Of a DNA stretch of 64,000 bases, positions 33,968 through 60,700 are shown piece after piece; the first letter of the stretch is position 1; every line of letters starts with the position of its first letter. Made by a program: the position numbers and the translations under genes. The stretch is from Phaeosaccion multiseriatum (taxonomy: Eukaryota > Protista > Ochrophyta, other classes). The notes under the pieces were generated by a model. The model did not search any database. It saw only the letters and a list, made by a program, of their open reading frames with translations, and was not told where the DNA came from. The stretch is taken from NCBI GenBank assembly GCA_965112735.1, contig OZ218956.1, forward strand, positions 496,001-560,000, in the 5' to 3' direction.

Positions 33968-36790
33968 TCAGCAGTCGGCGTAGGGCATTGGTGTGAAAGG
34001 TTTCAGAGGTACACCGGCGAAGTGCCACGTCCCCTTCGTTGGGTCTTCGTCTCCGGCAGCAATAGGGCCAGGGGATGGAGGCGGTCGAATCACTTGCCCC
34101 CTGCTGGGTCGAGAGTTGTCCCCCAAGATACTACCGGGCTTCACAATGCCGCCCCCTACCAAACGACTCTCCCGTCCCAGGACGACCGAGTGGCCGACCT
34201 TGATTGGGAGTAGCTCAATCTCTCCCATTTGGATGTTGTGCGGAGTTATCGCGACACCACTCGAGATCATCGCCCCGTCGCCAATGGTAAGCAGCCCAAA
34301 CTCTGATACCCATCTTGACTCGAAGTATGCGGACATACCAACAGAGGCACCCATCAGCCTGAGCAAGAGGGGGTATAGTGGCGTGCCCAGCGTCCATCCA
34401 AATCCCAATCGATCGGCCCCCAAGGACTCCAAAAAAAGGTACATCCTATACACATCTGCTCTCCCACTCTCCGATCGAAAAGACCCTTCGCGCTGAACCT
34501 GGCCAAAGACCTTCTTGAATGCGATGGTTGAGCACCCTACGGCAGCTTCAAAGAGGAGCAGCGCCACGGGCAAGAGCAGAGTCTGCGTATCAAAGCGGCT
34601 CCAAACGGCGCGCTGTGGCCCGTCCCGCAGACTTCCACTGGCGTAAAAGTCGGTGATGGGCTGCTGGAAGAGCTCGAGGAACTCGTACGCAATGATGGCG
34701 CAGCAAAACAGCCTGGCAAGGTGCACTGCCACAACAATCACCATGAACAGAGTACGCCTTCCTGTGATTCGTCTCGCCAGCTCGTGCGTCTCCTCGTCCA
34801 CTCGGTTGCGCGTTGTGGCTGATGAGGCCCGTGCTGGCTGTCCTGTCATGATCGCGCCGTCGGGCACTTCGGTCCCCTCAGGCACGCAGGAGCAGGAGGT
34901 GACCAACACGCGACGTCCCAGGGAGGAGCCCCCCCCGATGATGGTCTTGTCCCCTGTGTTGACTCCCTCACCCACGGAGCAGCCCGTGATCACGCCGTCA
35001 CTGAACCCCACCACGGCATTCACATTCAAGCGATAAGCATGGCAAGAGTCGGAGGGAAGGGGTTCGCAACGGGTTTGAACGGTGCATGCGTACTCACCTC
35101 GTTTCTGTGTTGATTGTTGTGCCACTCCCGAAGAACGTGTTGACCCCAATGTCCAGCGTGTCAGGGTCAGAGAATCCAACACCAGCGCCGAGGCTCGCAC
35201 TCCAGCTGATGGAAGCCCCAAGAAGCTTGTACCACAGGACAATGAGCTCTGTGGAGGGGAAGAAACTCATAAAGAACCGCTGAAGAATCCCCGTCAACCG
35301 ATTGGCAGTCTCGCGGCGGGCGAGGGCGAAGGTAGACATGTCGCTCGTTCGTTGGCCCTTGCGCAGCTTGCCGACAAGCACCCACTTCAAGGCCACGCCC
35401 ACGATCACGGCAACAGTGCCAATGATTGCCAGCCAAATGAAGAGCAGGAGGATGCCAGTGTAGCGCCCGGCGCCGACGACATTGGAAGCTTCAAGCTGGA
35501 AGACTGTCGCTGCGAGAAAGCCTGGCAAGAACGTGGTCGCGATGCCGGCAAAGATCAGCACGAGCTGCATCCAGCCCTTCGATCCGAGCGCGGGTGCTCT
35601 CAGAGGGGGCTGTTGGGGCGGCATGCGCATCGCCGCTGGATTGCCCTCATACACCCGCTGTTTCGCGAGCCGCGTGCCTGAGGGTACAGTCGCTTTCACT
35701 CCGATGGTCACACCGTCCTCCAGCACTGCTCCTCCATGGACAGAGCTCGATGCGCCCAAGTCGCAGCTCGACCCTATCACCACCTGTGTGTAAGGAACAT
35801 TGGGTGAGGCATCGTCAAGACAGAGCATCGGCGGCCAGGCTGTGTGTAGACAGCGTAAGTCAGGACATGTTTGCAGATTCTGTGTTCGCATAAAAATGAT
35901 CAGTTGAGTTGGCATTGACGGGCACGATCTGTGCCTGCAAGTACTCACCTTGTCGTAGCGAATTTTCATGTCCCCAATCAGGGTTTTGGGGGATATCATG
36001 GCACTCCCGCTCACAGAGCAGTTATCGCCGATGTGCACCAAGTCAAACTCGCTCATGCGCACCTGCAAACGAGACGCGGAACGAGAGACTTTAGCAACCC
36101 CCAGCATTGATTCCGACCCTCCGCACGCAAAGTGGCTTACCCCTGTGAGATCGCAGCCGGTGCCGATGTGCGCCCCCATCATGCGGTAGAGAGGCACGAG
36201 CACGACCGAGTCCGGGAAGAGAATGGCCACCAGCGGGTAGAAGAAGTAGCCCAGGTATGTATCTACGACCCAGCTGAGAAGGTAAGGGAGGCGGCAAGTT
36301 GGGGGGGGGGCATGAAGGAAATAGCCCACATTGGTATCGTAGGAAGAGCCGCTCGGCGTCTTTGGCTACGATGCCTGCCTGAAGCCAAGAGGAGACCTCA
36401 AACCACTCATCACTCACCATCGGAAGTGGTACGTACTGTAGACCTTGTACACGCCCACTTTATATCGTCCCACAATGCTCCACTTCACCGCGGGGGCAAC
36501 CAAGAGGGACAGGACTACGAAGACCAATCCAGAGAGAAAGCTTCCGAGGAGGATCGCAAGATATTCGTTGTTGAAGGGGGTGTTGCGATTGAAGAGAGCG
36601 TCCACGCGAGGACTGCTTAGAGCTTGCTGAGTCTCAAGAAGCTTCAAGCCCTGGAAGAGGTTAAGCAGAGGGAACCCCGACACTGCGGTCCCCACACTCA
36701 ACGAAATCTTCCCAAGCAAGACGACGACGACGAAAATGATGACCAGCAAAGCCGCCCCCTGCGCTGCGGCCACAGTCGCCAACCTGAAGG
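33968..36790 (-). other. Pls/NRPS-terminal-type domain: TM segments alternating with three hexapeptide-repeat (left-handed beta-helix) units
   Basis: Three repeats of the pattern [TM, TM, K(W)xxxG, xxxxGAxIG, LxxIGD, hexapeptides, GxP]: VKWSIVGRYK/YRMMGAHIG/LVHIGDNC/YEGNPA, LKWVLVGKLR/YKLLGASIS/LDIGVN/MTGQPA, FKKVFGQV/LRLMGASVG/LLTIGDG/FAGVP. Confidence 0.85.
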
Positions 36791-39700
36791 CCGTGTAGCC
36801 CAACTCGGCCTTGCGATCAGTGGGCATGTGCGCGTCGGACGCGAGCCACTTCCGACCAGCGTTGCTGACAGCCCCGCTCGGCGCAAGCTTGTCATCTGCG
36901 GCCGCTCGAGCAGCGCCCACATGCGTCAGGCAGGCCTCGTGGACGAAGCTCGAAAATGCATCCACGGTCGGCATGTCAAAGAGCGCCGCGGGCGTCACCA
37001 CAGACAGGAGCCCGTTGACCTTGTCACCACCGCTCTCCAGATGAGCACTTGTCTGCTCGTCTCTCCCCTCGATGATGTTGACAACCCGCACTACAAACTC
37101 TGCGGCAGCCACCGAGTCGTCAGCCAGTACCTCCAGTATATCAAGATTGCGAGCATTGAGATCCAGAGCTGTCTCTGAGCCGCCAGCTGACGGGCTTCGG
37201 CTTTGACTTGCAATTTGTTGCTCGAGAGCCTCCAAAACAATACGTCGCACTGCATCCTCTCCCTTTGCAACAGGTAAAGCCCGCAACGTGCCCAACTTTC
37301 CTGGAGCTCGAGCAGTGCCACCCCCGTCCTTCACACAGGCCTCGCTGATGAAGCTCGAGAGCGCACTCAAGGTCGGCATATCGAAGATAGCGGCAGGAGT
37401 GATATGGGATCGGAGGCCCTCGCCCTCTCTACCCACATGCTCATCGCCTTCGTCTTCGATAGCGTCAACCACTCGCGTCACCATCTCTGCGACGGCGACA
37501 GAATCGTATGCCAACGCTTCCAGCACGTTCGGGTCCGGCTCACTGGCAAATCCCCCCTCCGGAGCACCGGAGACACTCTCTACGGCGCTGATGACGATGC
37601 TCCTCACGGATGCCTCTCGTTCCAACGGAGACATTGCCTGCAGCTCACTCAGCCTCCCCGGCGCATCGAGATGCTCCGCAACATCACCAGCGGCAGCAGG
37701 GAGAGCGTGGGGCAGCGGGAAAGAGCGGCGCGTCTGATATCCTGTCCATGCCCTTCTCTGCGGCTTGGCAGTAGCCACGGCGAAGTGCTGTGCCAATGCG
37801 TCATATGCTGGCGTCGGCCCCTGCAGAATGGTATGTGCATTAAATCCACCCAACCCAAACGAGTTGACCCCGGCAACGAAGCCCTCTCCATCACTGCGAC
37901 ACGCGGCCAAAGCCGTCATCTGCGTGGGGAGTACTATGGGCAGCCCCTCCAGCTTCAGCATTGGATTGATCTCCTTGAGGTGCAGGTTTGGAGGTGCTGC
38001 CCCATGGTGCAACACCAAGATAGCCTTGATGAGCTGCGCCATTCCTGAAGCTCCCTCCATGTGGCCCAGTGTCGTCTTCACAGTGCCCACCACAAGAGGA
38101 GCCTGATGGGGTCGACCGTCTGCATACACGGCCTTCAGAGCGCCTGCACAAAGCAGGGGGGGGAGAGGAGAGGAGCGGAGAGGAGAAAACATCACTTTAC
38201 GATAGGACGTGATGCCATCGCTTCGAGCTCCACTACAACGAGCAAGAGGACCAGCGCAGGCGCTGCAGGAGCTCAAGCGGGGCTAACCTACCCATTTCGA
38301 TGGCGTCTCCCGTGATGGTGGCCGTGGCGTGCGCCTCTACATAGGACACGTCACTGCCCCTGTAGCCCGCGCGAGAGAGAGCCGCAGCAGCCACGCTCTT
38401 CTGCGCCACTCCTTTGGGGGCGGACAGGGAGCTGCTGATCCCACTGTGGTTGACCTCAGTCGATTTGATGGTGGCAAGGATAACGTCGCCATCGCGCTTC
38501 GCATCCACGCAGCGCTTCAGCACCACCGCTCCGCAGCCCTCGGCTCGAACGTATCCGTTCGCTGCGGCGTCGAAAGACTTGCAGCGTCTGAGGGGAGGTG
38601 AGGAAAGGAGGTATTGGGTGGGCAGCGCAGGTAGGTAGGTCAAAGGGTTAGAGAGCGGAAAGACGCGGTCAGTCTATGCCTGTGGTAAGGTCTGACTCAC
38701 CCTTTGGACAGTAGTCCTGCCTTGTCGAGTGCTCCGAAAGCCTGGCGATGCAGCAGAAGGTTGACACCCCCCACCACCGCGCCGCTGCATTTGCCCAGCA
38801 CAAGATTGTTGCAAGCCGTGTCAAGTGCCACAAGAGCAGAGGGGCATCCTGTGTCGATGGTCTGGCAATTGCCCGTGAGGCCCAGCGTGTGCGATACGCG
38901 GCCCGCCACGCACGCTGCGCTCCCCCCGACGAGGGAGTATGCGCTTTGCTTTGCGCCGCTCTCCTGCTGAAGCATGCTCCACTCAGCTCCGGACTTGCCG
39001 ATGAAAACCCCGATATCCAGGCCATGCAGACTCTTTGGCCCCTCGTCGAAACCCGCCCTGTACAGGGCCTCGTATGCAGTCTCCAGCATGATACGCTGGC
39101 TGGGGTCGAGCGCTTCCGCCTCCGCTACAGAGATGCGGAAGAACGCATTGTCGAACTTTTCGACCCCATCGATAAAGCCACCTTTGCAGAACGGAGGGGG
39201 GCGTAGAGGGAGAGGGTGAGGGGAGAGTCAGCGGGGGCGAGAGGAACGGAGAGAGAACGAGAGGAAGAGCGAGAGGGGGGGGGGCATAGGGAGAGAGATA
39301 GAGAGGGAAGAGAGAAAGAGAGAGAAAGAGGGGGAGTGTCGAGGAAGCCCCGGCGTCGTGGGGGAAGTCGACGAGATTCACACGGCCCAGTTCGCCAATA
39401 GGGCAATCAACTTGATCAACACCTATGCAATGCCTTCACCTTGGATTCCGGCCCCCAGACCTCGCTCGGGCGGCGCTTCAGAGACGCAGTCCTGCTGGGC
39501 GCACAGCTTGGCCCAGAACGCCTCCGGGCTGTCGCAGCCCCCCGGGAAGCGGCATGACATCCCGATAATCGCAATGTCCCCGTCGGCAACTGCATGTCGC
39601 AGAGAGGCGGCAGCCGACACATTGCCGCTCGCGCTTCCCTCCTCCCCGAAGAGCACTTCCTCGACATGCGCTGCCAGCAAGGCGGGTGTGGGGAAGTCGA

Positions 39701-42700
39701 AGAACGCTGTAGTCTCAATTTCAAAGTCCCTCCCGTCCGCGCTGCTGTACAAACGGTCCTCCAGCGTCTCCGCCAGCTCGGCCATCATCACTGAGGTCAT
39801 GCCCGCCTCCATGAAGCGGTCGTCGGCGGTCAGATCCTGATTCTGCCTCACCTGCACGGCAATCGCAAGGACCTTCTCCAAGATCATCGCCAGCCTTTCC
39901 TCCCTAGTGAGTTTCTCCATAGTACGCATGGCCAGACCGCCTTCTAGCCCTTCTCTCCCATCAGGGACCTCGCCTTCGACGAAGCGACGTCTTTCCTCAT
40001 CCTCAGGAGCTGAGCGCATGCTGGCAAGTTCCGCAGGAGGAGGGTCCTGTCGGTGGTGGTTGGGGGAGAAACGGCACACGTCAGACAGTGTGAGACTCGA
40101 CGCAAAACCCTCGGCAGACGATTCCCTCACACAACGGCGGATGAAAAAAGCTGTGAAGGGCAAGTACCAAAGCACACAGATTGAAGGGGGGCAAAGGCAG
40201 GGAGAGATGGGCAAAACTGTGGAGGGCAAGTACCAAAGCACACAGATTGAAGGGGGGCAAAGGCAGGGAGAGATGGGCAAAAAAAGAGGCCTCCACTCCG
40301 GCTCACTCGCACCTGTGACATCGCAGTGAGGTCCTCGGTGAGCTCGTGCACCATGTGCAGCTCGCCGGCGTGAAGCGCCTGTCTCGTAGCCCGCCGTCGG
40401 ATCTTGCCGCTCGTGGTCTTGGGGATGGTCTTCTGCTTGACGGCCACCACCCTGGCCGCTCGGAGGCCCAGACAGGACGACACTGCGGCTTGAGCGGCCT
40501 CCACCACTGCCTGTGCTTCACCCTCTCGCTCCTGGCGGATCTCGAACACCACCTCCAGCATGCCGTCCCCTCCCGTCTCATCGGAGGAAAAGGCCGCGAT
40601 GCAGCTCTGCCGAACAGCGTCAGACGCCTCTTGCACGGCGAACTCCACGTCCTGCGGGTAGTGGTTGACCCCGTTGAAGATGATGAGGTCCTTGATGCGG
40701 CCGCAGATGTACAGCAACCCCTCTTCCACAAAGCCCACGTCGCCCGTCCGTAGGTACTGGCGAGGAGGACACAAGCTGTCTCTGCCCTCGGGCCCACCCT
40801 GGAGGGAGAGCTTCGCCTGGAAGACCTCCTTCGACAGCTCTGGCTTGCCCCAGTACCCGGCGGCGACAGAGGGGGAGGAGATCCAGATCTCTCCCGTGGT
40901 TGCTGCTTCACTAACCTCTTCCATGGTGTCGGGACTGACAATTCGAATGTCCGCAAAGTCCGCTCTCTCGTTCGGGGAGCCGACGGTGGTGAGCTCCGGC
41001 CGTGAGAAGGATCGAGTCAGAGCAGAGGCCCAGGAAACTGGCAAGCGCGGGCGAGCGAGCGAGGAAAGACGAGGAGCACATCGGAGAAAATGAGACCAAC
41101 CCTCGCACTCAAGGAGACTACACGAAAATTGGCAATCCTTCGCCACTAGGCAGCACCCTCCTTGCTCTTCACAATGACTACTCACCAAATACCACGTGCT
41201 CGGCGAGCCCATACCCGGATGAGAACCACCCGGGCCGCAAACCGAAAGGCTGGAAGGCCTCCTCGAATCTCTCCACCGTTACTCCTCGAATGGGCTCAGC
41301 CGCGTTAAGCAGAGTCACTACGGAGGACAGATCCAGCTTGGGCTCCTTGCGAGTGCCGCGCACCTTGGCCATGTAGCGGGCGCAGAGGGCGTAAGCGAAG
41401 TCGGGGGCAACGGACCACTCCACGCGGTGCCGAGAGACAAGCTCCAGCCAGAGCAGGGGCCGCCTGATGAAGCTCACTGGGGACATGTAGTGCATGGTCA
41501 TGCCTGTCAGGAAGGGGGTGAGGAGGCCGAGTACGAGGCCTATGTCCTGAGAGTTCAAGAGAGTAGGGAGGGCAGTGATTGCGGCGCGAGTGAGCAACAA
41601 CGAAGGCGAGACGAGAAGCAAAGAAAGCAGAGTCGAGGGGTGAGTGTATTGTGTGTGTGTATGGTGTACTTCATCACGCTTGCTGCTTCCGTCCTGGCCG
41701 CCTGTTTCTCTGTTTCGCCTCCCTCCCTTCGCGTGTCCTCCACGGCCACGCCCTCCTCCCTCGCGCCCCCCCCTCCCTCCTCTTTGGAAATTACATGATA
41801 CTGGGGCAACCACGAGAACCCCGTTGTTGGCACGTTATGAACAAGCTCGGTTGGTGCAGCTTTCGCGATGAGACCCCTCTTGTATGCCTCAGGCTGGTCT
41901 GAGGAAGAGTCTCTAGCTTTGTCCGAGGGCCACAGTTGGGTCATCCCCCCGGGGTGGCAGCCGATGAAGTACACGTTGGCCATGAGCGCTCCGAAGGTTA
42001 CCATGACACCCTTGGGGTCGCCGGTAGAGCCACTGGTGTACTGGAGGAGGGCCAGGTCCTCTTCAGTCAGGCTCGGCTCGTCAAAGCTCCTCGGTGATGA
42101 GGAGGACGATGAGGAGAAGAAGCTCTGGAGCAACCCCCCATCTGTAGCCTTAAAGGCGAGGGCTTTTGGCCACAGCTTGCGGGAGTCAGAGAGCGGATTG
42201 GCCGTGTCCAGCTTGCGCAGAGCTGCGATCTTGGAGTCGGTGAGGCACAGCACGGGCTTGCAGTCCGACACGATCTTGCTCATCTTCGGCAGTGACTTGG
42301 ACAGGGGAGGGACAGGTGGATAAACCATCACCGCCACCACGCCCGCTCTCAGACAGCCCAGGAAGGCTGCGAAGAAGTGCAGACCCGGCTCGTAGCACAG
42401 CACCACCATAGCCCCCTTGGGCACGCCCCACTCCTCGCGCAGCATGCAGGAAATGTTGCCCGCCTAGGGAAGAAGACGGGGTGGGAGAATGATTGTTTAG
42501 CTTGCACCTTAATGATCGCATAGAATGCAGGACTGCAGCAGAAGCAAGCAACTGAGACCAGGAGAAGGACATCACCAAGTACGGAATCCTTGCTCGCTTA
42601 CCTCGCCCCACATGCGCTTGAAGCTGTACCTCTCCGCCTGCTTGCCCTTTCCATCATACCAAAAGGCGAAGGGATTGTCGCCGAGCTCAGTCGCGATCTC

Positions 42701-45700
42701 CTGCGCCCTCGCCAGCAAAGGAGTGAGAGAAGAAGAACTGAGTCTGGGCAGAGACTTCATGTCCTCCTCCCCCTCATCGTCTAGAGATCCTCCCGTCCCA
42801 GGCGCTGAGGCCTTGCGCAGCTTGAAGGCATGCATCCCTCCATTTGCTGGGCCCCCCTTCCTGCTGCTGGGAGGGGGCGCTGTCTCGACACCCTCAGACT
42901 GGTCCTTCTCCGCAGCCTGCGAAACCTGCACAACGCCGGCCAGGATGTCGTGAACGTCTGCTTTTGAGGACGTAGACGTGGCCAGGCCGCGAGGCTGAAG
43001 GCGTGAGACGAGGCCCTGTTCCTGCTGCTGCTGCTGCTGCTGCTGCTGCACGTCAGATGGCATGCGCGCCGGAAATCGGGACTGTCCCGCAAGCATTCGA
43101 CCCTTCATTCCGTCGGGAGTGATCGTGCCTTCGAACTTTTTCCAGCCACTGAGGATACAGTGCGCATTTGTGCCTCCAACGCCGTACGAGTGAACAGCCG
43201 CAAGAGGGCCCTTTCGCGATGGCGACGCAGTGAGAGCAGCGGGCCTCCTGGCGAGCATGATGCGGGTGCCTTGGAGATGCCGAACAATGCGGGGACTGAC
43301 CACCTCCTGGTGCAGATTGCGAGGCACGAAGCCTTTCCCCAATACCAAGAGCGCCTTGATGAGCTGGCCCATGCCGGAAGCTCCCTCCATGTGGCCTATG
43401 TTGGTCTTGACTGCGCCCACAACGAGGGGCACCATCGATTTTGCCCCGTTATCTAGAGATGCCTCTGCGTACACGGCCTTAATCGCGTTCATCTCGATAA
43501 TATCCCCCGCCATGGTTCCCGTCCCGTGCGCCTCGATGTACGTGACGTCGCGAGGGGAAGCACCGGCGTCTGCCAAGGCCTGCTTCATTACGTCCTCTTG
43601 CGCGGAGCCGCTGGGCTCCCCCATTTTCTTCATTTCACCGTTGTGATTTGTAGCACATCCCTCGATGACGCCAATGATGCGGTCATTGTTTGCCTCGGCG
43701 TCTTCGAGCCGCTTCAGAACGATCACTCCACAGCCCTCCGCCCTGACGTAGCCGTCCCCAGACGCCCCGAAAGAGGCCGTGCGCCTGGCAAAGCGATTGA
43801 AGGGACGGCAGCTCAAGGTGAAGCAAGGTTGCACGAAAGAGGACAGAGGAAGAAGAAACAAAATGGGGCTTCGCAAGCGACCAAAACTTACCCTTTGTCA
43901 GAGAGGAGGCCGCTCCTATGGATAGTCGAAAAGGAGCTGGGGTGCAGGAAGAGGTTGACGCCTCCAACCAGCGCGGCGTCACACTTTGCATGCTGCAGCT
44001 TCTCACATGCGGCCTCGAGCGCCACCAGGGACGAAGAGCACGCCGTGTCCACTGCAAAACAAGTGCCCGAGAAGCCCAGAGCATGACTGACCCGCCCAGC
44101 GAGGACAGAAGCGCTTCCTCCAGTGAGGGAGAACTCGTCAGTCTCAACACCGCAGCCTTTTTGACGTGCACCCCAGTCGTGAGAGCTAGAGCCGATGAAC
44201 ACCCCTGTTCTCGAACCCTTCATACAACGGGGTCCGTTGAGAGCGTAGCCCGCTCGAGAGAGAGCCTCGTACGATACTTCCAGCAGGATGCGCTGGTTAG
44301 GGTCCATTGCCTTTGCCTCCGCTGCCGATATGCCGAAAAAGGCGTTGTCGAACAGGTCCACGTCCTCAAGACAGGCCCCAAACCTCACTCCCTGCTCCTC
44401 GCTCATGGTGAATGGCAAAGGCTTGACGCTGTCCGTCTCCTGCAAGAGGTTGTCCCAGAATGAGTCCGGGTCATCTGCTCTGCTCGGGAACCGGCACGCC
44501 ATTCCGACCACGGCGACACGGGTGCTCAACTTTGTCGAGTGCGGAGTGGGAGGGGGCGGAACTGGTGCCACAGGCGGCTCTACCGCTGCGAGCAGCTGTT
44601 TGGCCAGCCACTCTGCCAAGGTCGCGGGAGTAGGATGGGCGTATATCACGCTGTTGCTCATGCCTACGCCGAAATGAGAAGCCACGCGATGCCGGAACTC
44701 CTCAAGGGACAAGGAGTCAAGGCCAGCCTCCGTCAGGGAAGTGGTGCTGTCCAGCGCTTCGGCACCCTCCCCGATGCACTCCTTGGCGATGTCCATGACT
44801 GCAAGGCTCACCGCGTATCTTCGGTCTCCGGTGGACAGCTCCAACAGCTCCTCGCGCACTGATTTATCGGCCGCGATGTTGCTCGACGAGCCTGCTGCAG
44901 CTGTTGAGACAAGCCCTGACAGAAGGGGTGTACTGCGGCACGCCCCCATGCTCTCTGCAAACTTGGCCCAGTCCATCCCAGGCAGGACGGCCACATCGCC
45001 CAAATACGCTGACGGCATCGCAGCGGCATCTAAGGCAGCCATGCCCAGCTCAGCTGACACTGTGCCCACACCCGCAAGCTCCAACCGCTTTTGAACGATA
45101 TCGAGCTGGGCGGCCATACCAACGTCAGCCCACGGCCCCCACTGCAATGATGTCCCTGCGAGCCCGAGGTATCGCCTGTGCCGCATCAGCCCATCCACAG
45201 CCGCGTTCGCCGCAGCGTAGTTGGCCTGTCCAGCGTTACCCAGTACTCCGGCCATGGATGTGAAGCAAAAGAAGAAGTCAAGGCCAGGAGCGCGCCCCTC
45301 CTCCTTCGCCCAAGCCAACGAAAGCTCGTGCAAGTTCACCGCCCCCTGCACCTTGGGTCGGAACACCCTCACCACGCTCTCCGCCGTTTGCTCTCCGAGC
45401 AGCTTATCATCCAACACCCCGGCAGCATGCACCACACCGCGGACGGGGGGCAGCAGAGGCAGCACGCCCCCTAGGCAAGTCCGAAGTGCCTCAGCATCAG
45501 CAACATCACAAGTAGGAGTAAGGATATTTAGGTCTACGACGTTCCGAAGCTGCTGCCACTGTTCTGTCATGCTCTCGGCGACCTTCCCACTCCTCGACAG
45601 CAGCACCAAGTGACGAGCGCCCCTCGACGCGAGGTGCTGGGCCGTCACGAGGCCGAGAGCCCCCAGACCGCCGCTGATGACGTACGTACCATCGGACACG

Positions 45701-48700: not shown

Positions 48701-51700
48701 GCGTGCGACACCTCCAGGGCCTTGCAGCCCACCCCATCAGCCGTGAGCTTCTCCACCACCTTGTCCACAGCGCTGCGAGCTCCAGAGATCACGCTCGCGC
48801 TCGGTCCATTCGACGACGCCAGCACCACCTCGCCTGCCCCCCCCGCAGCGTCGATGCTTGCCAAAGTCGCCTCCTTGCCTGCCCTCACTGCAAACATCAC
48901 TCCCTCGCCCTCGGGGCAGGCCTGCATGGCGGCTCCTCTCATGGCGGACAGCATCAGCCCGTCCTCCAGCGACATGACACCGGCCACGCACGCCGCCACT
49001 ACCTCGCCCAGGCTGTGGCCCATCACCATGGAAGGCTCCACGCCCTCCGACTTCCACATCTCACACAGGGCGTACTCCAGCACAAACAGGCACGGCTGGC
49101 AGTAGCGTGTCTCCTTCAGCAGCGCTTGTGCAGTCTCCTCCTCCTCCTCCTCCTCCCCGTCCTCAGCGACCGCTGGGTACATGAGCTCCACCACAGACTT
49201 GTCCAGCCAGGCCCGCTCCATAAGCAGCGTGCTGCACCGCTGCACGCATTCGCGGAACACGCCCTCCTTCTCGTACAGCTCCCTGCCCATGCCCACGTAC
49301 TGCGAGCCCTGCCCTGTGAACAAGAACGTCACCGGCAAACTCTTCTTGCTTTGCTGTCCATCCAGCTGCAGCAAGGCTTCGCTCTCGCTCTCCGCTACCA
49401 TCGTCGGTTCGAAGCTGCTGAGCACCGCATGGGCGTTGGCTCCTCCCGCGCCGAAGGAGCTGACAGCAGCAGTGCGCCTCTCCCCATCCCTGGCACTTAG
49501 TGGCACCATGGCAGACGGCAAAGTCACCGGAAAGTCATCCAAACGAAGCTCCGGATTGAGCTTCTTCATGTGGAGATTGGGGGGAGCACATCCATGCTGA
49601 AGGACCAGCAGAGCTTTGATGAGGCCAGCGATTCCGGACGCAGCCTCTAGATGCCCGATATTGGTCTTCACCGCCCCAACTACCAGGGGCCGATCTTCCT
49701 CGCGGCCATTGCCATACACGGCCCTCAAAGCACTCATCTCGATGGGATCGCCGAGAGACGTCCCGGTGCCGTGCGCCTCCACGTAATCAACCTCCATACC
49801 GCTCAAGCCGGCCTCCGCCAGTGCCTGCTCCATCAGACGCTGCTGAGCAGTAGGGCTTGGGGCAGTATAGCGCAAACTTCTCCCGTTGTGGTTCGCAGCG
49901 CAGCCATTGACGACAGCGAGGATGTGGTCGCCATTGGCCTGTGCATCGTCGAGTCGCCTCAGCACCACGGCGCCGCAGCCCTCACCTCGAACATAACCGT
50001 TGGCCGCAGCGTCGAACGTCTTGCAGCGCCTGACAATGAGGAATTGTGGGTTTGCAAAAGTGAAGAGCAGAGAAGAGGTAATCCATCAGCAACAGGGGTC
50101 TTTCAGACAGCTTGTGCCGTTGATCTGGCTCTCATAGCGGCCTCAAGAACAAGTTCCCACCCACACAAAAGAGACACGCACTTACCAGTCAAGACTCAGG
50201 AAACCTCCTTCGGCGAGGGTCTCGAACGTTTGTGTACCCAGCAGCAAGTTGACGCCTCCCACCAAGGCGATGTCACACTTGCCCAGCCGCAAGCTGCTGC
50301 AGGCCCCTTCCAGTGCCACCAAAGACGACGAGCACGCCGTGTCGACACTCATGCTCGGCCCTCCGAGGCCCAGCACGTAAGATATCCGATTTGCCGGACT
50401 CGCATTGGACATACCCATGACGGAGTATGCACCCTTGTTCGCATCGTCTACCACTGAGCCCCACTCGCTGCCGGACATACCCACGAACACACCGGTGTTG
50501 CTGCCATGTAGTGTATCCTTGCGGTATCCCGCCCTGTGCAGAGCCTCGTACCCCACCTCCAGCATGACGCGCTGATGAGGGTCCATGGCACCCGCCTCGG
50601 CCGCAGAGATGCCGAAGAAGGTGTTGTCAAAAGCCTCCACTCCATCAATGAAGCCCCCTTGCCACTGCTTCTGACCCTCATCGGCCCAGCGTCCGACAGG
50701 GCTGGCTCCAATACAGTCTGTCCCTGCACAGAGCATAGCCCAGAAATCCTCGGGATTATGAACCCCTCCAGGGAAGCGACAGGCGATCCCGACGACGGCC
50801 AGCGGCGCCCTTGAGTCAGTGCGGTGCGCTTCAGCAGCGATTGCCGCAGAGCGATTGCTAGAGGGTTCCTCTGTCTCTCCAAGCACCTCCGCTTCGATCC
50901 ACACTGCCAGCGCCGCTACCGTGGGATATGCGAAGAGCATGTCAGTGGTAGCTACAACCCCGAAGCGAGCCTGTAGCCGGCCGCGCAGCTCCACTGTTGA
51001 CAAAGAGTCAAGACCTGCTTCCATCAAAGGCGTGTTGGCGTCTAGCTCTTCGGCACCATCCCCAAGGAGGTCCTTGGTCATATCAAGCACCGCCAATCGC
51101 ACTGATTGCTGTCGTTCACCAAGGGGCAGTCTCAAGAGCGCCTCGCGCACTTCATTGTTGAGTTCGGTGTTGCTGGACGCGCCTGCTGCTGTTGAGACAA
51201 GCCCTGACAGCAGGAACGAGCCGCGGGACGCACCCATGCTCTCTGCAAACTTGCCCCAGTCCATTCCAGGCAGGACGGCCACATCACCCAAATACGCTGA
51301 CGGCATCGCAGCGGCATCTAAGGCAGCCATGCCCAGCTCAGCTGACACCGTGCCCACACCCGCCAGCTCCAACTGCTTTTGAACGATATCGAGCTGGGCG
51401 GCCATACCCACATCAGCCCACGGCCCCCACTGCAATGACGTCCCTGCGAGCCCGAGGTGTCGCCTGTGCCGCATCAGCCCATCCACAGCCGCGTTCGCCG
51501 CAGCGTAGTTGGCCTGTCCAGCGTTACCCAGTACTCCGGCCATTGATGTGAAGCAAAAGAAGAAGTCAAGGCCACGAGTGCGCCCCTCCTCCTTCGCCCA
51601 AGCCAACGAAAGCTCGTGCAAGTTCACCGCCCCCTGCACCTTGGGTCGGAACACCCTCACCACGCTCTCCGCCGTTTGCTCTCCGAGCAGCTTATCATCC

Positions 51701-54700
51701 AACACCCCGGCAGCATGCACCACGCCGCGGACGGGGGGCAGCAGAGGCAGCACGCCCCCCAGGCAAGTCCGAAGTGCCTCAGCATCAGCAACATCACAAG
51801 TAGGAGTAAGGATATTTAGGTCCACGACGTTCCGAAGCTGCTGCCACTGTTCTGTCATGCTCTCGGCGACCTTCCCACTCCTCGACAGCAGCACCAAGTG
51901 ACGAGCGCCCCTCGACGCGAGGTGCTGGGCCGTCACGAGGCCGAGGGCCCCCAGACCGCCGCTGATGACGTACGTGCCATCGGACACCACTGGCACACCA
52001 TACGAGGGGTTGGTCAGCACCACCTTGCCCATGTGCTTCGCTTGGCTCATGAATGCCATGGCCTTCTGAGTATCCTCCCTCATGTCAAATGGTATGGTCG
52101 GTAAGGGCTTCACATTGCCAGACATGCAGTCTTCAGCCAGACGCTGCAGCCCGCCACTGATCCAGCCCGGCTCGCCGGCCGAAAAGTCAGACTCAACCAT
52201 GCTATCCAATGCCAGCAGCTCGTACCTCACATCGGGCCGGGCAGTGCGCACCTGGTCGTGACTCCACACGCCTCGCTTGCCAATCTCGACAAATATACCA
52301 CCCTCGCTGAGCATGGCCAGCGAGAAGGGAATGTAGTCTTCACTCAGAGAGTTGAGCACCACGTCCACCTTCATCTCACCCATGGACTGCTTGAACGCCT
52401 CCGCGTCTCGCGATGAAGCAATGTGCTTCACTCCCAAGCTCCGGAGGAAGTCATGCTTCACAGCAGCACCAGCAGTAGCGTACACCTCTGCGCCGACCCG
52501 CTGAGCATACTGCACGGCGGCAAGGCCCACACCGCCAGATGCGGCATGAATCAACACCTTCTGTCCAGCCTTGAGGTCGTGGAAGGCCTTCACTACCGTC
52601 AAGCACACGGTTGGAAGTGCAGCGGCCTGCTCGAAGCTCAGCGCCGCCGGCATCATGGCCAGGCACGCGTCCCCCGTCACCAGATGGCTGCGCAAACATC
52701 CTCCGTCTGCGAAGCCATATATGTTATCGCTGACACGAAAACGCGAGCTTCCTCCCACACTGATCACCTCCCCGGCGAACTCGGAGCAGGGATCTCCAGG
52801 GTCGCCAGGGTACAGGTCCAGTACATTCAGCACGTCCCGGAAGTTCAGGCCAACAGCTCTCACTACCACCTCCACATAGCTACCGGTCGGGTCGAGAGGC
52901 CGATGTTTGCCAACATCAACATCATCGCGAAGGAGAAAGGCATTGGCTATACTACTTCTTGCCTTAAGCTCCAGGGAAAACGGAAGAGTCAAAGCTGGGT
53001 GTGCAAGCTGAGGCATCCAGCACTGACCATCGCGTACCCACACATATTCTGTGGTGCCAGGGAAGGCCAAGCCTAAGGTAAGCTCGCTGTCTAGGGACTC
53101 CTTGTCGCTCAGGTCCAACACACTAATCTGCATGTAAGGGTGCTCCATCCTCGCAGTCCGCACCAGACCTGTAACCCAGCTGTGACGCCAGTCCTCGCCG
53201 CTTTCGACGCCTCTCGTCAAGACCGTCAGCGGTACATTCGACGCAGTGGACAGGCTCCTGAGTAGCGATAACAGAGCGTAGACCGCTCGTGCTTGGGGGC
53301 TTCCTTCTGTGTCTTCTTCGTCAGCTCCGGGTATCAGCACGTACAAGACGCGAGCCCACTCGTCTTCTCCAAGAAGAAGAGCACCATCATCCACGGAGGC
53401 GTCCATCCCCCCATACTGAGTGTGTACGTGCACGTTCTCCGGAACACAGCGCCGCACTGCAGCAATGATTCCAGTCTCTCCCTCCCTCTCGTGCTGTGGA
53501 ATAATCACCAGCCACTTCTGTGGCGCCGCTGCCTCAGCAGGGTCAGTATCACTACCAGGGGCCTCCTCCTGTGTAGACGGTTCAGCGGCCTGCCACTCCA
53601 ATGCGTACATTGCACGACGAACGGGGCTGACACGTACAAAGTTCCTCGCCCGCTGCACGCGGAAGCCCCGCATCTCCACGAGCACGTCTTCGCTGTCGAA
53701 GTCTGCAATGCGGATGTCAAACTTGACGCTGTCCGCCACTGACTGGACCTCACTCAGCTTCGTGTGCACCCACACGTTCTTTCCCGTCATGGAGGCGGAA
53801 AGCACCACCTCGTCAAAGCCAGCAGGTAGGAATGGAGAGTTCCCTCCCTCCTTGAGCAGCTTCCTTGGCAGCGCTTGCATGATGGTATGGGTAGCATTGT
53901 CCAGCACCGCGGGGTGCAGAGCAAAGCCCTTCATCTCCCACGGCTCGCACAGCTCCTCATCCATGGCACACACGACCGACAGAACCTCTCCGTCCCCTCC
54001 GTACATGTGGCGGGTCCGCTGAAAGCGGGGGCCGTACTGGAAGCCGGCACCTGCCAAAGACTTGTAGAGCCCACTCGACACGTCCTGCTCGCCAACTCTA
54101 GCTCGAATGGATTCCACGTGCAGCGAAGCACGCGCCATGGTTCGCTCCTTGATAGACACGTGCCTCATTCTTGCCGTGATGCCCTTGTCGCCCGTGGCAC
54201 CTCCGAAAAACTGCATGCTTCCATCTGCCGCGTGAAGGGCGCTCATCCCGGCACAGACCATTGTATGGCGGTTTTGCGCGTGCTCCGTGCCGACCTGCTG
54301 GAAACCCTCAATCTCCAGTGGAACCACAAAGCTGGCTCCTTGCAGGACTACCTGCTGCTCCACTCCGAGCTGTCGTCCTCCTAGAGCAGCGACGACGCCC
54401 ACTTCAATGTACGTCACCCCCGGAATGATCACCGTGTTGTTGACGGCATGGTCCTTGAGAAGGTCCTTGAGGTGAGGGGAGAAGGGGCTGGGGAGGCGCA
54501 TTCCGTCTCCCTCCTGGACTACCTCGCCACTCGGCATAAACGCCAGCGGAGGCTTGTACCAAGGAAATGATCGGCGAGTCGGATAAAGCTCACGATGCTC
54601 CGGCCCCACTATACTGCCCAGGGCTGCTCCAAATGAATCCTCGGAGTTCTTCCCGAGTGTGAGGGAGGAGATCCACGCCAGCCCCTCGCGACGCTCGCAC

Positions 54701-57700
54701 TTGGCTCCCATGCTGCTCAGCACAGGGTTGGGACCCACCTCAACAATGCTCAGGTCAGCCCCCCTCCCGTCTCCCATCCAGTGCTCCACCAGCGTGTGGA
54801 TGCCTTCTGCGAACAGCACAGGCGACAGCATGTGTTGCACCCAATACGTCGCCTGCGTCACCTCCTCCCCTCTCACCACCTCACCCGTCACGTTGGACAC
54901 CAGAGGAATGCGTGGGGCGCTGAATGACACCTGCCTCAGAGCCTCCTCCAGCGCACGTACAGCGGGCTCCATCAGAGGAGAGTGGAAGGCGTGCGACACC
55001 TCCAGGGCCTTGCAGCCCACCCCATCAGCCGTGAGCTTCTCCACCACCTTGTCCACAGCGCTGCGAGCTCCAGAGATCACGCTCGCGCTCGGTCCATTCG
55101 ACGACGCCAGCACCACCTCGCCTGCCCCCCCCGCAGCGTCGATGCTTGCCAAAGTCGCCTCCTTGCCTGCCCTCACTGCAAACATCACTCCCTCGCCCTC
55201 GGGGCAGGCCTGCATGGCGGCTCCTCTCATGGCGGACAGCATCAGCCCGTCCTCCAGCGACATGACACCGGCCACGCACGCCGCCACTACCTCGCCCAGG
55301 CTGTGGCCCATCACCATGGAAGGCTCCACGCCCTCCGACTTCCACATCTCACACAGGGCGTACTCCAGCACAAACAGGCACGGCTGGCAGTAGCGTGTCT
55401 CCTTCAGCAGCGCTTGTGCAGTCTCCTCCTCCTCCTCCTCCTCCCCGTCCTCAGCGACCGCTGGGTACATGAGCTCCACCACAGACTTGTCCAGCCAGGC
55501 CCGCTCCATAAGCAGCGTGCTGCACCGCTGCACGCATTCGCGGAACACGCCCTCCTTCTCGTACAGCTCCCTGCCCATGCCCACGTACTGCGAGCCCTGC
55601 CCTGTGAACAAGAACGTCACCGGCAAACTCTTCTTGCTTTGCTGTCCATCCAGCTGCAGCAAGGCTTCGCTCTCGCTCTCCGCTACCATCGTCGGTTCGA
55701 AGCTGCTGAGCACCGCATGGGCGTTGGCTCCTCCCGCGCCGAAGGAGCTGACAGCAGCAGTGCGCCTCTCCCCATCCCTGGCACTTAGTGGCACCATGGC
55801 AGACGGCAAAGTCACCGGAAAGTCATCCAAACGAAGCTCCGGATTGAGCTTCTTCATGTGGAGATTGGGGGAGCACATCCATGCTGAAGGACCAGCAGAG
55901 CTTTGATGAGGCCAGCGATTCCGGACGCAGCCTCTAGATGCCCGATATTGGTCTTCACCGCCCCAACTACCAGGGGCCGATCTTCCTCGCGGCCATTGCC
56001 ATACACGGCCCTCAAAGCACTCATCTCGATGGGATCGCCGAGAGACGTCCCGGTGCCGTGCGCCTCCACGTAATCAACCTCCATACCGCTCAAGCCGGCC
56101 TCCGCCAGTGCCTGCTCCATCAGACGCTGCTGAGCAGTAGGGCTTGGGGCAGTATAGCGCAAACTTCTCCCGTTGTGGTTCGCAGCGCAGCCATTGACGA
56201 CAGCGAGGATGTGGTCGCCATTGGCCTGTGCATCGTCGAGTCGCCTCAGCACCACGGCGCCGCAGCCCTCACCTCGAACATAACCGTTGGCCGCAGCGTC
56301 GAACGTCTTGCAGCGCCTGACAATGAGGAATTGTGGGTTTGCAAAAGTGAAGAGCAGAGAAGAGGTAATCCATCAGCAACAGGGGTCTTTCAGACAGCTT
56401 GTGCCGTTGATCTGGCTCTCATAGCGGCCTCAAGAACAAGTTCCCACCCACACAAAAGAGACACGCACTTACCAGTCAAGACTCAGGAAACCTCCTTCGG
56501 CGAGGGTCTCGAACGTTTGTGTACCCAGCAGCAAGTTGACGCCTCCCACCAAGGCGATGTCACACTTGCCCAGCCGCAAGCTGCTGCAGGCCCCTTCCAG
56601 TGCCACCAAAGACGACGAGCACGCCGTGTCGACACTCATGCTCGGCCCTCCGAGGCCCAGCACGTAAGATATCCGATTTGCCGGACTCGCATTGGACATA
56701 CCCATGACGGAGTATGCACCCTTGTTCGCATCGTCTACCACTGAGCCCCACTCGCTGCCGGACATACCCACGAACACACCGGTGTTGCTGCCATGTAGTG
56801 TATCCTTGCGGTATCCCGCCCTGTGCAGAGCCTCGTACCCCACCTCCAGCATGACGCGCTGATGAGGGTCCATGGCACCCGCCTCGGCCGCAGAGATGCC
56901 GAAGAAGGTGTTGTCAAAAGCCTCCACTCCATCAATGAAGCCCCCTTGCCACTGCTTCTGACCCTCATCGGCCCAGCGTCCGACAGGGCTGGCTCCAATA
57001 CAGTCTGTCCCTGCACAGAGCATAGCCCAGAAATCCTCGGGATTATGAACCCCTCCAGGGAAGCGACAGGCGATCCCGACGACGGCCAGCGGCGCCCTTG
57101 AGTCAGTGCGGTGCGCTTCAGCAGCGATTGCCGCAGAGCGATTGCTAGAGGGTTCCTCTGTCTCTCCAAGCACCTCCGCTTCGATCCACACTGCCAGCGC
57201 CGCTACCGTGGGATATGCGAAGAGCATGTCAGTGGTAGCTACAACCCCGAAGCGAGCCTGTAGCCGGCCGCGCAGCTCCACTGTTGACAAAGAGTCAAGA
57301 CCTGCTTCCATCAAAGGCGTGTTGGCGTCTAGCTCTTCGGCACCATCCCCAAGGAGGTCCTTGGTCATATCAAGCACCGCCAATCGCACTGATTGCTGTC
57401 GTTCACCAAGGGGCAGTCTCAAGAGCGCCTCGCGCACTTCATTGTTGAGTTCGGTGTTGCTGGACGCGCCTGCTGCTGTTGAGACAAGCCCTGACAGCAG
57501 GAACGAGCCGCGGGACGCACCCATGCTCTCTGCAAACTTGCCCCAGTCCATTCCAGGCAGGACGGCCACATCACCCAAATACGCTGACGGCATCGCAGCG
57601 GCATCTAAGGCAGCCATGCCCAGCTCAGCTGACACCGTGCCCACACCCGCCAGCTCCAACTGCTTTTGAACGATATCGAGCTGGGCGGCCATACCCACAT

Positions 57701-60700
57701 CAGCCCACGGCCCCCACTGCAATGACGTCCCTGCGAGCCCGAGGTGTCGCCTGTGCCGCATCAGCCCATCCACAGCCGCGTTCGCCGCAGCGTAGTTGGC
57801 CTGTCCAGCGTTACCCAGTACTCCGGCCATTGATGTGAAGCAAAAGAAGAAGTCAAGGCCACGAGTGCGCCCCTCCTCCTTCGCCCAAGCCAACGAAAGC
57901 TCGTGCAAGTTCACCGCCCCCTGCACCTTGGGTCGGAACACCCTCACCACGCTCTCCGCCGTTTGCTCTCCGAGCAGCTTATCATCCAACACCCCGGCAG
58001 CATGCACCACGCCGCGGACGGGGGCAGCAGAGGCAGCACGCCCCCCAGGCAAGTCCGAAGTGCCTCAGCATCAGCAACATCACAAGTAGGAGTAAGGATA
58101 TTTAGGTCCACGACGTTCCGAAGCTGCTGCCACTGTTCTGTCATGCTCTCGGCGACCTTCCCACTCCTCGACAGCAGCACCAAGTGACGAGCGCCCCTCG
58201 ACGCGAGGTGCTGGGCCGTCACGAGGCCGAGGGCCCCCAGACCGCCGCTGATGACGTACGTGCCATCGGACACCACTGGCACACCATACGAGGGGTTGGT
58301 CAGCACCACCTTGCCCATGTGCTTCGCTTGGCTCATGAATGCCATGGCCTTCTGAGTATCCTCCCTCATGTCAAATGGTATGGTCGGTAAGGGCTTCACA
58401 TTGCCAGACATGCAGTCTTCAGCCAGACGCTGCAGCCCGCCACTGATCCAGCCCGGCTCGCCGGCCGAAAAGTCAGACTCAACCATGCTATCCAATGCCA
58501 GCAGCTCGTACCTCACATCGGGCCGGGCAGTGCGCACCTGGTCGTGACTCCACACGCCTCGCTTGCCAATCTCGACAAATATACCACCCTCGCTGAGCAT
58601 GGCCAGCGAGAAGGGAATGTAGTCTTCACTCAGAGAGTTGAGCACCACGTCCACCTTCATCTCACCCATGGACTGCTTGAACGCCTCCGCGTCTCGCGAT
58701 GAAGCAATGTGCTTCACTCCCAAGCTCCGGAGGAAGTCATGCTTCACAGCAGCACCAGCAGTAGCGTACACCTCTGCGCCGACCCGCTGAGCATACTGCA
58801 CGGCGGCAAGGCCCACACCGCCAGATGCGGCATGAATCAACACCTTCTGTCCAGCCTTGAGGTCGTGGAAGGCCTTCACTACCGTCAAGCACACGGTTGG
58901 AAGTGCAGCGGCCTGCTCGAAGCTCAGCGCCGCCGGCATCATGGCCAGGCACGCGTCCCCCGTCACCAGATGGCTGCGCAAACATCCTCCGTCTGCGAAG
59001 CCATATATGTTATCGCTGACACGAAAACGCGAGCTTCCTCCCACACTGATCACCTCCCCGGCGAACTCGGAGCAGGGATCTCCAGGGTCGCCAGGGTACA
59101 GGTCCAGTACATTCAGCACGTCCCGGAAGTTCAGGCCAACAGCTCTCACTACCACCTCCACATAGCTACCGGTCGGGTCGAGAGGCCGATGTTTGCCAAC
59201 ATCAACATCATCGCGAAGGAGAAAGGCATTGGCTATACTACTTCTTGCCTTAAGCTCCAGGGAAAACGGAAGAGTCAAAGCTGGGTGTGCAAGCTGAGGC
59301 ATCCAGCACTGACCATCGCGTACCCACACATATTCTGTGGTGCCAGGGAAGGCCAAGCCTAAGGTAAGCTCGCTGTCTAGGGACTCCTTGTCGCTCAGGT
59401 CCAACACACTAATCTGCATGTAAGGGTGCTCCATCCTCGCAGTCCGCACCAGACCTGTAACCCAGCTGTGACGCCAGTCCTCGCCGCTTTCGACGCCTCT
59501 CGTCAAGACCGTCAGCGGTACATTCGACGCAGTGGACAGGCTCCTGAGTAGCGATAACAGAGCGTAGACCGCTCGTGCTTGGGGGCTTCCTTCTGTGTCT
59601 TCTTCGTCAGCTCCGGGTATCAGCACGTACAAGACGCGAGCCCACTCGTCTTCTCCAAGAAGAAGAGCACCATCATCCACGGAGGCGTCCATCCCCCCAT
59701 ACTGAGTGTGTACGTGCACGTTCTCCGGAACACAGCGCCGCACTGCAGCAATGATTCCAGTCTCTCCCTCCCTCTCGTGCTGTGGAATAATCACCAGCCA
59801 CTTCTGTGGCGCCGCTGCCTCAGCAGGGTCAGTATCACTACCAGGGGCCTCCTCCTGTGTAGACGGTTCAGCGGCCTGCCACTCCAATGCGTACATTGCA
59901 CGACGAACGGGGCTGACACGTACAAAGTTCCTCGCCCGCTGCACGCGGAAGCCCCGCATCTCCACGAGCACGTCTTCGCTGTCGAAGTCTGCAATGCGGA
60001 TGTCAAACTTGACGCTGTCCGCCACTGACTGGACCTCACTCAGCTTCGTGTGCACCCACACGTTCTTTCCCGTCATGGAGGCGGAAAGCACCACCTCGTC
60101 AAAGCCAGCAGGTAGGAATGGAGAGTTCCCTCCCTCCTTGAGCAGCTTCCTTGGCAGCGCTTGCATGATGGTATGGGTAGCATTGTCCAGCACCGCGGGG
60201 TGCAGAGCAAAGCCCTTCATCTCCCACGGCTCGCACAGCTCCTCATCCATGGCACACACGACCGACAGAACCTCTCCGTCCCCTCCGTACATGTGGCGGG
60301 TCCGCTGAAAGCGGGGGCCGTACTGGAAGCCGGCACCTGCCAAAGACTTGTAGAGCCCACTCGACACGTCCTGCTCGCCAACTCTAGCTCGAATGGATTC
60401 CACGTGCAGCGAAGCACGCGCCATGGTTCGCTCCTTGATAGACACGTGCCTCATTCTTGCCGTGATGCCCTTGTCGCCCGTGGCACCTCCGAAAAACTGC
60501 ATGCTTCCATCTGCCGCGTGAAGGGCGCTCATCCCGGCACAGACCATTGTATGGCGGTTTTGCGCGTGCTCCGTGCCGACCTGCTGGAAACCCTCAATCT
60601 CCAGTGGAACCACAAAGCTGGCTCCTTGCAGGACTACCTGCTGCTCCACTCCGAGCTGTCGTCCTCCTAGAGCAGCGACGACGCCCACTTCAATGTACGT

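Follow-up and report, generated by a model that had tools for sequence, protein, structure and literature searches.

The window analysed here is a 64,000-nucleotide stretch of DNA from Phaeosaccion multiseriatum (Ochrophyta; NCBI GenBank assembly GCA_965112735.1, contig OZ218956.1, positions 496,001 to 560,000 of the forward strand). Its G+C content is about 60%, and a long gene split by GT-AG introns on its minus strand encodes a polyketide synthase (PKS). Judged by its sequence and its predicted fold, the C-terminal ~780 residues of this synthase, encoded by the 3′ end of the gene and called the tail below, are a complete terminal domain of the Pls/PosA type standing in the position of a thioesterase. 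In the DNA, the tail closes one very large reading-frame chain ordered ...modules-KS-FAAL-ACP-KS-ACP-ACP-tail (KS, ketosynthase; ACP, acyl carrier protein; FAAL, an adenylating domain). We propose, with a probability of about 0.6 and on the strength of sequence, models and analogy, that the tail off-loads the carrier-bound chain by acyl transfer at the membrane.

The exon model of the tail region was read from the sequence and its splice sites were then checked. All four introns are of the GT-AG type.

38143-36418, minus strand: exon A, stop-free: last ketosynthase (C-terminal half), carrier-like units 1 and 2, transmembrane (TM) pair 1
36417-36274, minus strand: intron 1, 144 nt, GTGAGT...CAG
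36273-36141, minus strand: exon B, start of unit 1, with GAHIG
36140-36063, minus strand: intron 2, 78 nt, GTAAGC...CAG
36062-35949, minus strand: exon C, middle coils of beta-helix unit 1, with a lysine at the position of the unit-3 histidine
35948-35784, minus strand: intron 3, 165 nt, GTGAGT...CAG
35783-35098, minus strand: exon D, end of unit 1 (GNPAA), TM pair 2 and start of unit 2 (GASIS)
35097-35001, minus strand: intron 4, 97 nt, GTGAGT...CAG
35000-33971, minus strand: exon E, end of unit 2 (GQPAR), TM pair 3 and the whole of unit 3 (WHFAGVP)
33970-33968, minus strand: stop codon TGA, directly after exon E

Exon A lies within the open reading frame (ORF) 36414-38276, between an acceptor CAG ending at 38144 and a donor GTGAGT starting from 36417, and is matched by Ketoacyl-synt_C of Pfam at E 7e-14. 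Joining exons A and B yields HFR-C-WVVD, an exact match to the family motif l-R-k-W-l-v-D of our own tail profile, and exons B and C, compared by eye from their translations, are in register with unit 3 of the same protein. The exon model is therefore supported by homology as well as by the splice consensus. The exons of the tail contain neither stops nor frameshifts. From 34691 to 36812, contigs of four read sets from one sample are letter-identical to the window DNA, so that sequencing errors do not explain the frames. An assembly error or a pseudogene was considered and is rejected for now, given the identical read contigs and the intact exons.

Two further observations concern the same region. 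Introns 2 (36140-36063, 78 nt) and 3 (35948-35784, 165 nt) are stop-free multiples of three, and retention of one or the other would keep the frame and add 26 or 55 residues, respectively, to beta-helix unit 1. Read contigs also show alternative letters in the ketosynthase region, at 38388, 38760, 38850, 38897 and 39075, and other contigs diverge abruptly inside the tail, leaving loose ends at 34180, 35464 and 36817; these resemble alleles or paralogues from other parts of the genome.

The relationship of the tail to Pls and PosA was seen with several profiles. NCBIfam TIGR02353 matched three exon ORFs in profile order (E 7.3e-24, 4.3e-13 and 0.044): its positions 37-83 fell at TM pair 1, positions 161-387 in exon D (E 4.3e-13), and exon E was matched at E 7.3e-24. 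Pfam gave only weak Hexapep matches on the tail. When exon E was searched exhaustively against 1.84 billion representatives, 781 proteins were returned at E<=1e-3, the best at 30% identity and E 1.5e-25, and most with three matched stretches; the proteins of the source genome itself are evidently not in this library. Our own profile, built from 55 tails, placed the end of exon A at positions 112-158 (E 5.9e-11) and exon D at positions 235-459 (E 1.5e-26), and the unit-3 part of exon E was aligned to its unit-1 region. A search of the PDB by sequence found no solved Pls-type tail, only generic beta-helix proteins. The tail is not an equivalog of Pls or PosA, as is clear from the missing amino-acid loader, from the curated score and from the unit-3 motif, both described below.

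Kyte-Doolittle hydropathy resolved six hydrophobic segments in three pairs. The pairs and the motifs that recur after them are as follows.

36794-36663 and 36569-36465, minus strand: TM pair 1 (hydropathy), ending in AVKWSIVG
35576-35493 and 35483-35358, minus strand: TM pair 2 (hydropathy)
34759-34676 and 34588-34514, minus strand: TM pair 3 (hydropathy)
36491-36468 (AVKWSIVG), 35393-35370 (ALKWVLVG) and 34522-34502 (AFKKVFG), minus strand: K(W)xxxG motifs after the second helix of each pair
36176-36162 (GAHIG), 35219-35205 (GASIS) and 34351-34337 (GASVG), minus strand: GAxIG-like motifs
35645-35631 (GNPAA), 34843-34829 (GQPAR) and 34027-34007 (WHFAGVP), minus strand: closing motifs

A hidden Markov model (HMM) of a single unit, 132 positions long and built from 55 bacterial-type relatives, that is, from proteins of other organisms only, detected exactly three units in each of 19 homologues. 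Applied to the window, it again detected three, split over exon pieces: profile positions 13-99 and 75-127 for unit 1, 6-64 and 77-130 for unit 2, and 11-116, at 82 bits, for unit 3. Direct comparison of the units by BLASTP was weak (E 0.003 over one 48-residue stretch); 'weak sequence homology' has likewise been reported between the units of Pls (PMC10522769). As each hairpin returns the chain to the side from which it came, the carriers and all three units are predicted to share a membrane face, presumably that of the cytosol. A reading of this DNA made earlier from the sequence alone (the sequence-only reading) had described three homologous units, each with a TM pair, K(W)xxxG, a GAxIG-like motif, hexapeptide repeats and a closing GxP, and had likened them to the C1-C3 layout of Pls. 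Hydropathy, motif positions and the unit HMM bear out the description; TIGR02353, the library search with exon E, the tail profile and the three-unit HMM result bear out the likeness.

The fold was predicted for exon E with AlphaFold2 (AF2), using an alignment of 126 positional homologues. The model (pLDDT 84.7, pTM 0.82) consists of a left-handed beta-helix, a long helical hairpin and a second left-handed beta-helix. Along the chain, short strands at six-residue spacing are followed by two helices (residues 70-120 and 128-170, 51 and 43 residues long), a few short helices and strands, and a second run of strands. The 50 Foldseek matches listed against the PDB are without exception left-handed beta-helix proteins or designs derived from such proteins, and several have a probability of 1.00. 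The top solved matches were galactoside and maltose O-acetyltransferases, gamma-carbonic anhydrases and serine acetyltransferases. Against the ESM Atlas, the model matched clusters named Pls or PosA, with TM scores of 0.73-0.77 over ~290-310 residues; this match is not independent evidence, because the AF2 alignment came from the Pls/PosA family. The beta-helices that the sequence-only reading had expected from structure prediction are thus present in the units folded (exon E), and a fold without beta-helices was not seen.

The part of the synthase that feeds the tail was analysed in the same way. The elements concerned are listed here.

37317..37664, minus strand: carrier-like unit 1, with its candidate phosphopantetheine serine in AYDSV at 37502-37500
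36897..37289, minus strand: carrier-like unit 2, with its serine in ADDSV at 37115-37113
39426..42720, minus strand: FAAL-type adenylating domain and its carrier (Pfam AMP-binding, AMP-dom_DIP2-like and PP-binding)

One stop-free exon (38143-36418) spans the C-terminus of the last ketosynthase, the two carrier-like units and TM pair 1, and the in-frame fusion of the tail behind KS-ACP-ACP, already noted from the letters, stands on this exon. The two carrier-like units are 43% identical to each other. PP-binding of Pfam matched neither of them, even at E<=10, and for this reason the carrier assignment rests on a custom HMM, on language-model neighbours, on an alignment and on the fold. The custom HMM, made from the ACPs of this gene and of relatives, matched both units, each match consisting of two colinear halves around an acidic insertion. 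The leading neighbours of carrier-like unit 1 in the Atlas were all PP-binding clusters (score 0.91). In an alignment of 31 rows, which included 29 other carrier domains, the serines of AYDSV and ADDSV occupied the sole invariant column. Finally, the AF2 model of the carrier region (pLDDT 90.5) was a helical bundle whose nearest solved folds are ACPs of modular PKSs. The sequence-only reading had called these units tandem ACPs; they are divergent, and by sequence and model they are probably functional carriers.

The last ketosynthase (37800-39560, minus strand) keeps Cys-His-His in atypical motifs (DTGCPSA, EAHATAT and GHMEGASG). It is AT-less, no acyltransferase being found after it. Further upstream, a stop-free stretch of a single exon (42572-43876, minus strand) leads from the C-terminus of the preceding ketosynthase into the N-terminus of the FAAL. 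The two are linked by ~150 residues of low complexity, among them a run of poly-Q at about 43046-43017. This continuity means that the FAAL-ACP-KS-ACP-ACP-tail cassette is fused in frame to the multi-module synthase upstream, where full KS-AT-DH-ER-KR-ACP modules precede that ketosynthase. NCBIfam and Pfam searches of the ORFs of the gene found no thioesterase or reductase (R) domain before the stop, in keeping with a terminal domain that takes the place of the thioesterase, as had been supposed.

A set of 148 tails was then compared. An amino-acid adenylation domain precedes 91 of them and a FAAL or PKS only 5/148, so the earlier statement that relatives mostly stand behind amino-acid A-T didomains holds. 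Other arrangements are C-A-T-tail and A-T-tail-FMN dehydrogenase. In the library matches P0111, P0114 and P0140 an FMN-dependent dehydrogenase domain follows the tail (A-T-tail-FMN_dh), and in P0088 a family-2 glycosyltransferase lies far downstream of it; the tail is therefore not always terminal. P0117, a Trinity transcript of the jakobid Stygiella incarcerata (EukProt, 4380 aa), is a two-module PKS ending in a tail, in the order FAAL-ACP-KS-AT-KR-ACP-KS-AT-DH-ER-KR-ACP-tail, and shows that an expressed PKS-tail fusion exists elsewhere. A Symbiodinium protein has the order FAAL-tail and a Marchantia protein FAAL-oxidase-ACP-tail. In a quick maximum-likelihood tree, the window tail fell in a set of 36 rows (SH-aLRT 98) that holds all five FAAL/PKS-linked tails; the members looked up belong to Stygiella, Symbiodinium, Gymnodinium, Aureoumbra, Telonema, Phalansterium, Halteromyces and Obelidium. 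By sequence, the window tail thus groups with a mostly eukaryotic set of relatives. Branches within this set are long and its inner order is not supported, and the five FAAL/PKS-linked tails do not form a single clade in the tree (5 changes, no better than with shuffled labels).

The sequence-only reading had further announced a new PKS off-loading mode. As an architecture, the arrangement is not new. Blanc et al. described in 2012 seven FAS-I-like proteins of Coccomyxa in which this domain replaces the thioesterase, with EST support (PMC3446292). Together with the Stygiella transcript, these proteins show that the window gene is not a first fusion of a PKS or fatty-acid synthase (FAS) with the tail. 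No Coccomyxa sequence was among the matches of the exon E and Stygiella-tail searches, and a word-indexed search with the Stygiella tail for large PKS-tail proteins returned only itself and the Marchantia FAAL-tail protein. Literature searches on TIGR02353, on Pls with PKS or algae and on 'Pls-like' yielded only PMC3446292, PMC10522769 and a Cladocopium SNP preprint. The architecture class has been known since 2012, recurs in protists and is uncharacterised; the tail described here is a new version of it.

Candidate catalytic residues were sought in unit 3. In 126 aligned relatives, this unit carries the motif Q-x-H-L-F-E-D-R-x-x-K, with each of seven residues present in 83-98% of rows, together with M-K-G-E.

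Relatives (consensus): Q-x-H-L-F-E-D-R-x-x-K; M-K-G-E
Window tail: T-P-H-N-I-Q-M-G-E-I-E; S-R-G-Q
Stygiella PKS tail: I-x-H-I-M-Q-Y-G; H-E-G-Q
34240-34238, minus strand: His254 of exon E (unit 3), candidate general base, in a column that is histidine in 98% of the 126 homologues

The histidine alone is kept of the seven motif residues in the window tail. Both PKS-linked tails retain it, and in both the glutamates of the two motifs are replaced by glutamine, the aspartate by methionine or tyrosine, and the arginine by glycine. In a marginal phmmer alignment, His254 coincides with His115 of the galactoside acetyltransferase LacA (1kqa), the catalytic base of that enzyme. Across the 780 residues of the tail, structural glycines and prolines are kept along with this histidine. 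We infer from these sequences a single histidine-based acyl-transfer site, whose pocket may no longer need to hold a cationic amino acid. Absence of the acidic Glu-Asp-Arg motif would fit a change of substrate in which an uncharged acyl group has taken the place of a cationic amino acid.

In the membrane off-loading that we favour, the tail would act from the thioesterase position, behind the AT-less ketosynthase and the two divergent carriers. The acyl chain would pass from the carrier to a nucleophile other than water, namely a hydroxyl or an amine on an acceptor that is exported or associated with the membrane. The general base would be the one conserved histidine, in unit 3, a role known from hexapeptide acyltransferases and proposed also for Pls. 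Several points weigh against this proposal. The TIGR02353 scores of 84.1, 48.5 and 12.1 bits are below the curated cut-off of 423.1 bits; the exon ORFs were scored separately, and even their sum stays far under it. None of the RNA runs searched holds the stretch, the four matching runs being DNA contigs of one sample that contain no joints. The fold model of the tail covers exon E, and the AF2 models draw on alignments of the very family that they resemble. The alignment to LacA has an E-value of 0.0026, and units 1 and 2 of the window have a lysine or nothing at the position of the histidine. The motif difference rests on two PKS-linked sequences; among the other FAAL-linked tails the histidine is kept in 3/4 and the same surrounding positions vary. 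To our knowledge, all biochemistry on the domain concerns cationic amino acids and none its acyl-linked members, and we know of no solved structure or established catalytic residues for the terminal domain of Pls or PosA.

These points leave room for other readings. Loss of the Glu-Asp-Arg motif and of other near-invariant residues, the lack of a histidine in units 1 and 2 and a score far under the family cut-off would all suit a catalytically dead membrane anchor, with release left to another enzyme or to spontaneous beta-keto thioester chemistry. Against such an anchor stand the glycines, prolines and histidine conserved over 780 residues free of stops and frameshifts, the same substitution pattern in an expressed homologue (Stygiella), and a gene in which NCBIfam and Pfam detect no other release domain; we regard it as unlikely. 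Similarly unlikely, in our view, is an iterative polymerase as in Pls, which would turn hydroxy- or amino-bearing polyketides into a polyester or polyamide and pass it across the membrane. The characterised Pls and PosA are indeed polymerases in which the carrier-bound unit is attacked by a free acceptor (PMC10522769), the window tail retains the full layout of three units and six helices, and tandem carriers could feed an iterative site. However, the nearly invariant unit-3 motif of the polymerases is gone except for the histidine, the window groups with a mostly eukaryotic set that has many different loaders, and the last module has no reductase, so that no hydroxyl is predicted on the last unit.

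Water could also be the acceptor, the tail then hydrolysing the chain as a membrane-bound substitute for a thioesterase. An activated thioester at a general-base site would by default be hydrolysed, and nothing points to an acceptor; yet the relatives that have been characterised transfer to amines, O- and N-acyltransferases are the nearest solved folds, and six membrane helices would be unneeded, which makes us doubt this option somewhat more strongly. We give very little credence to a tail made separately from a start inside exon A, or to a gene that is not expressed at all. An in-frame methionine does stand just ahead of the first helix ('AHMPTDRK'), library matches of ~700 residues correspond to the tail alone, though many may be fragments, and no RNA run with the stretch was found. 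Carriers and first helix pair nevertheless share one stop-free exon, nearly all full-length relatives have the tail behind a carrier domain, the exons are intact and the splice sites are canonical.

Acyl transfer at the membrane would bear on how algal assembly lines release their products and where these products go. The presence of the domain, with changed active-site surroundings, in a set of eukaryotic PKS and fatty-acyl synthases suggests that it is a general membrane-bound off-loader, with a role beyond that of a polyamino-acid polymerase. A more specific picture, to which we attach only a small chance, is a membrane transacylase or polymerase that releases long, mostly saturated chains, links them by ester or amide bonds to one another or to a wall or membrane acceptor, and exports them; if true, the gene would encode a synthase of a resistant aliphatic polymer or surface lipid of algae. 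For mutagenesis, the histidine that is retained and the acidic residues that are lost offer concrete targets.

Elsewhere in the window, two upstream modules (50185-55878 and 56472-58052, minus strand) share an identical stretch of 90 residues in their ACP regions, a sign that a module was recently duplicated in tandem. The ORF 2362-3384 (plus strand) strongly matches glycosyltransferase family 41 (O-GlcNAc-transferase type; E 1e-37), and Pfam matched none of the nine further ORFs tested between 6199 and 25912. Among the neighbouring ORFs of positions 1-26000, this GT41-like match is the only one, and no partner enzyme is suggested.

Comparison with known systems places the tail closest to the terminal domains of Pls from Streptomyces albulus, which makes epsilon-poly-L-lysine, and PosA from Acinetobacter baumannii, which makes delta-poly-L-ornithine. 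In all of them, the chain ends, directly behind a carrier, in three helix pairs (six helices) alternating with three mutually homologous units of hexapeptide repeats, and the unit-3 histidine and the structural glycines and prolines are kept in the window tail. For PosA, a pseudo-threefold assembly of beta-helices over six bent helices has been predicted (PMC10522769). The window tail differs in its loader, which is the KS-ACP-ACP of a PKS rather than an amino-acid A-T didomain, the nearest adenylating domain being of the FAAL type and one module upstream. Identity to Pls and PosA is about 20-30%, TPHNIQMGEIE and SRGQ replace QxHLFEDRxxK and MKGE, and the window gene is eukaryotic and split by introns.

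The FAS-I-like proteins of Coccomyxa subellipsoidea, compared by description only, are also algal type I FAS/PKS chains with this domain in place of a thioesterase. They are single-module, FAS-like proteins of a green alga, whereas the window synthase is multi-module, with a mid-chain FAAL, an AT-less ketosynthase and two carriers. Stygiella P0117 shares with the window a FAAL-primed modular PKS ending in a tail, the E to Q and R to G replacements beside the kept histidine, and membership of the 36-row set. In contrast, its tail follows the single ACP of a fully reducing module and is ~21% identical to that of the window, both being long branches.

Hexapeptide O-acyltransferases such as LacA (1kqa) and maltose acetyltransferase (3hjj) have a left-handed beta-helix like that predicted here, and the histidine of the window tail falls at LacA His115. 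The trimeric beta-helix enzymes LpxA and LpxD use acyl-ACP as donor. All these enzymes are soluble homotrimers, and in hexapeptide acyltransferases the active sites lie at the interfaces between the three packed helices; the window tail would combine three different units in one chain, tied to the membrane by hairpins, with the donor tethered in cis. The sequence-only reading supposed that these three units could form a pseudo-trimer of the kind typical of such acyltransferases. The terminal thioesterase domain of mycobacterial Pks13, a FAAL-fed synthase, releases its chain onto a hydroxyl acceptor and not onto water. It is a functional analogy only, as it has an alpha/beta-hydrolase fold and no homology to the tail. 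What sets the window gene apart from these systems is a pair of divergent carriers in tandem, a ketosynthase that lacks an AT and, by way of a FAAL in mid-chain, an in-frame fusion to a multi-module synthase. Also new are the mostly eukaryotic kinship of the tail, its histidine aligned with LacA His115 and the absence, as in the Stygiella tail, of the Glu-Asp-Arg motif.

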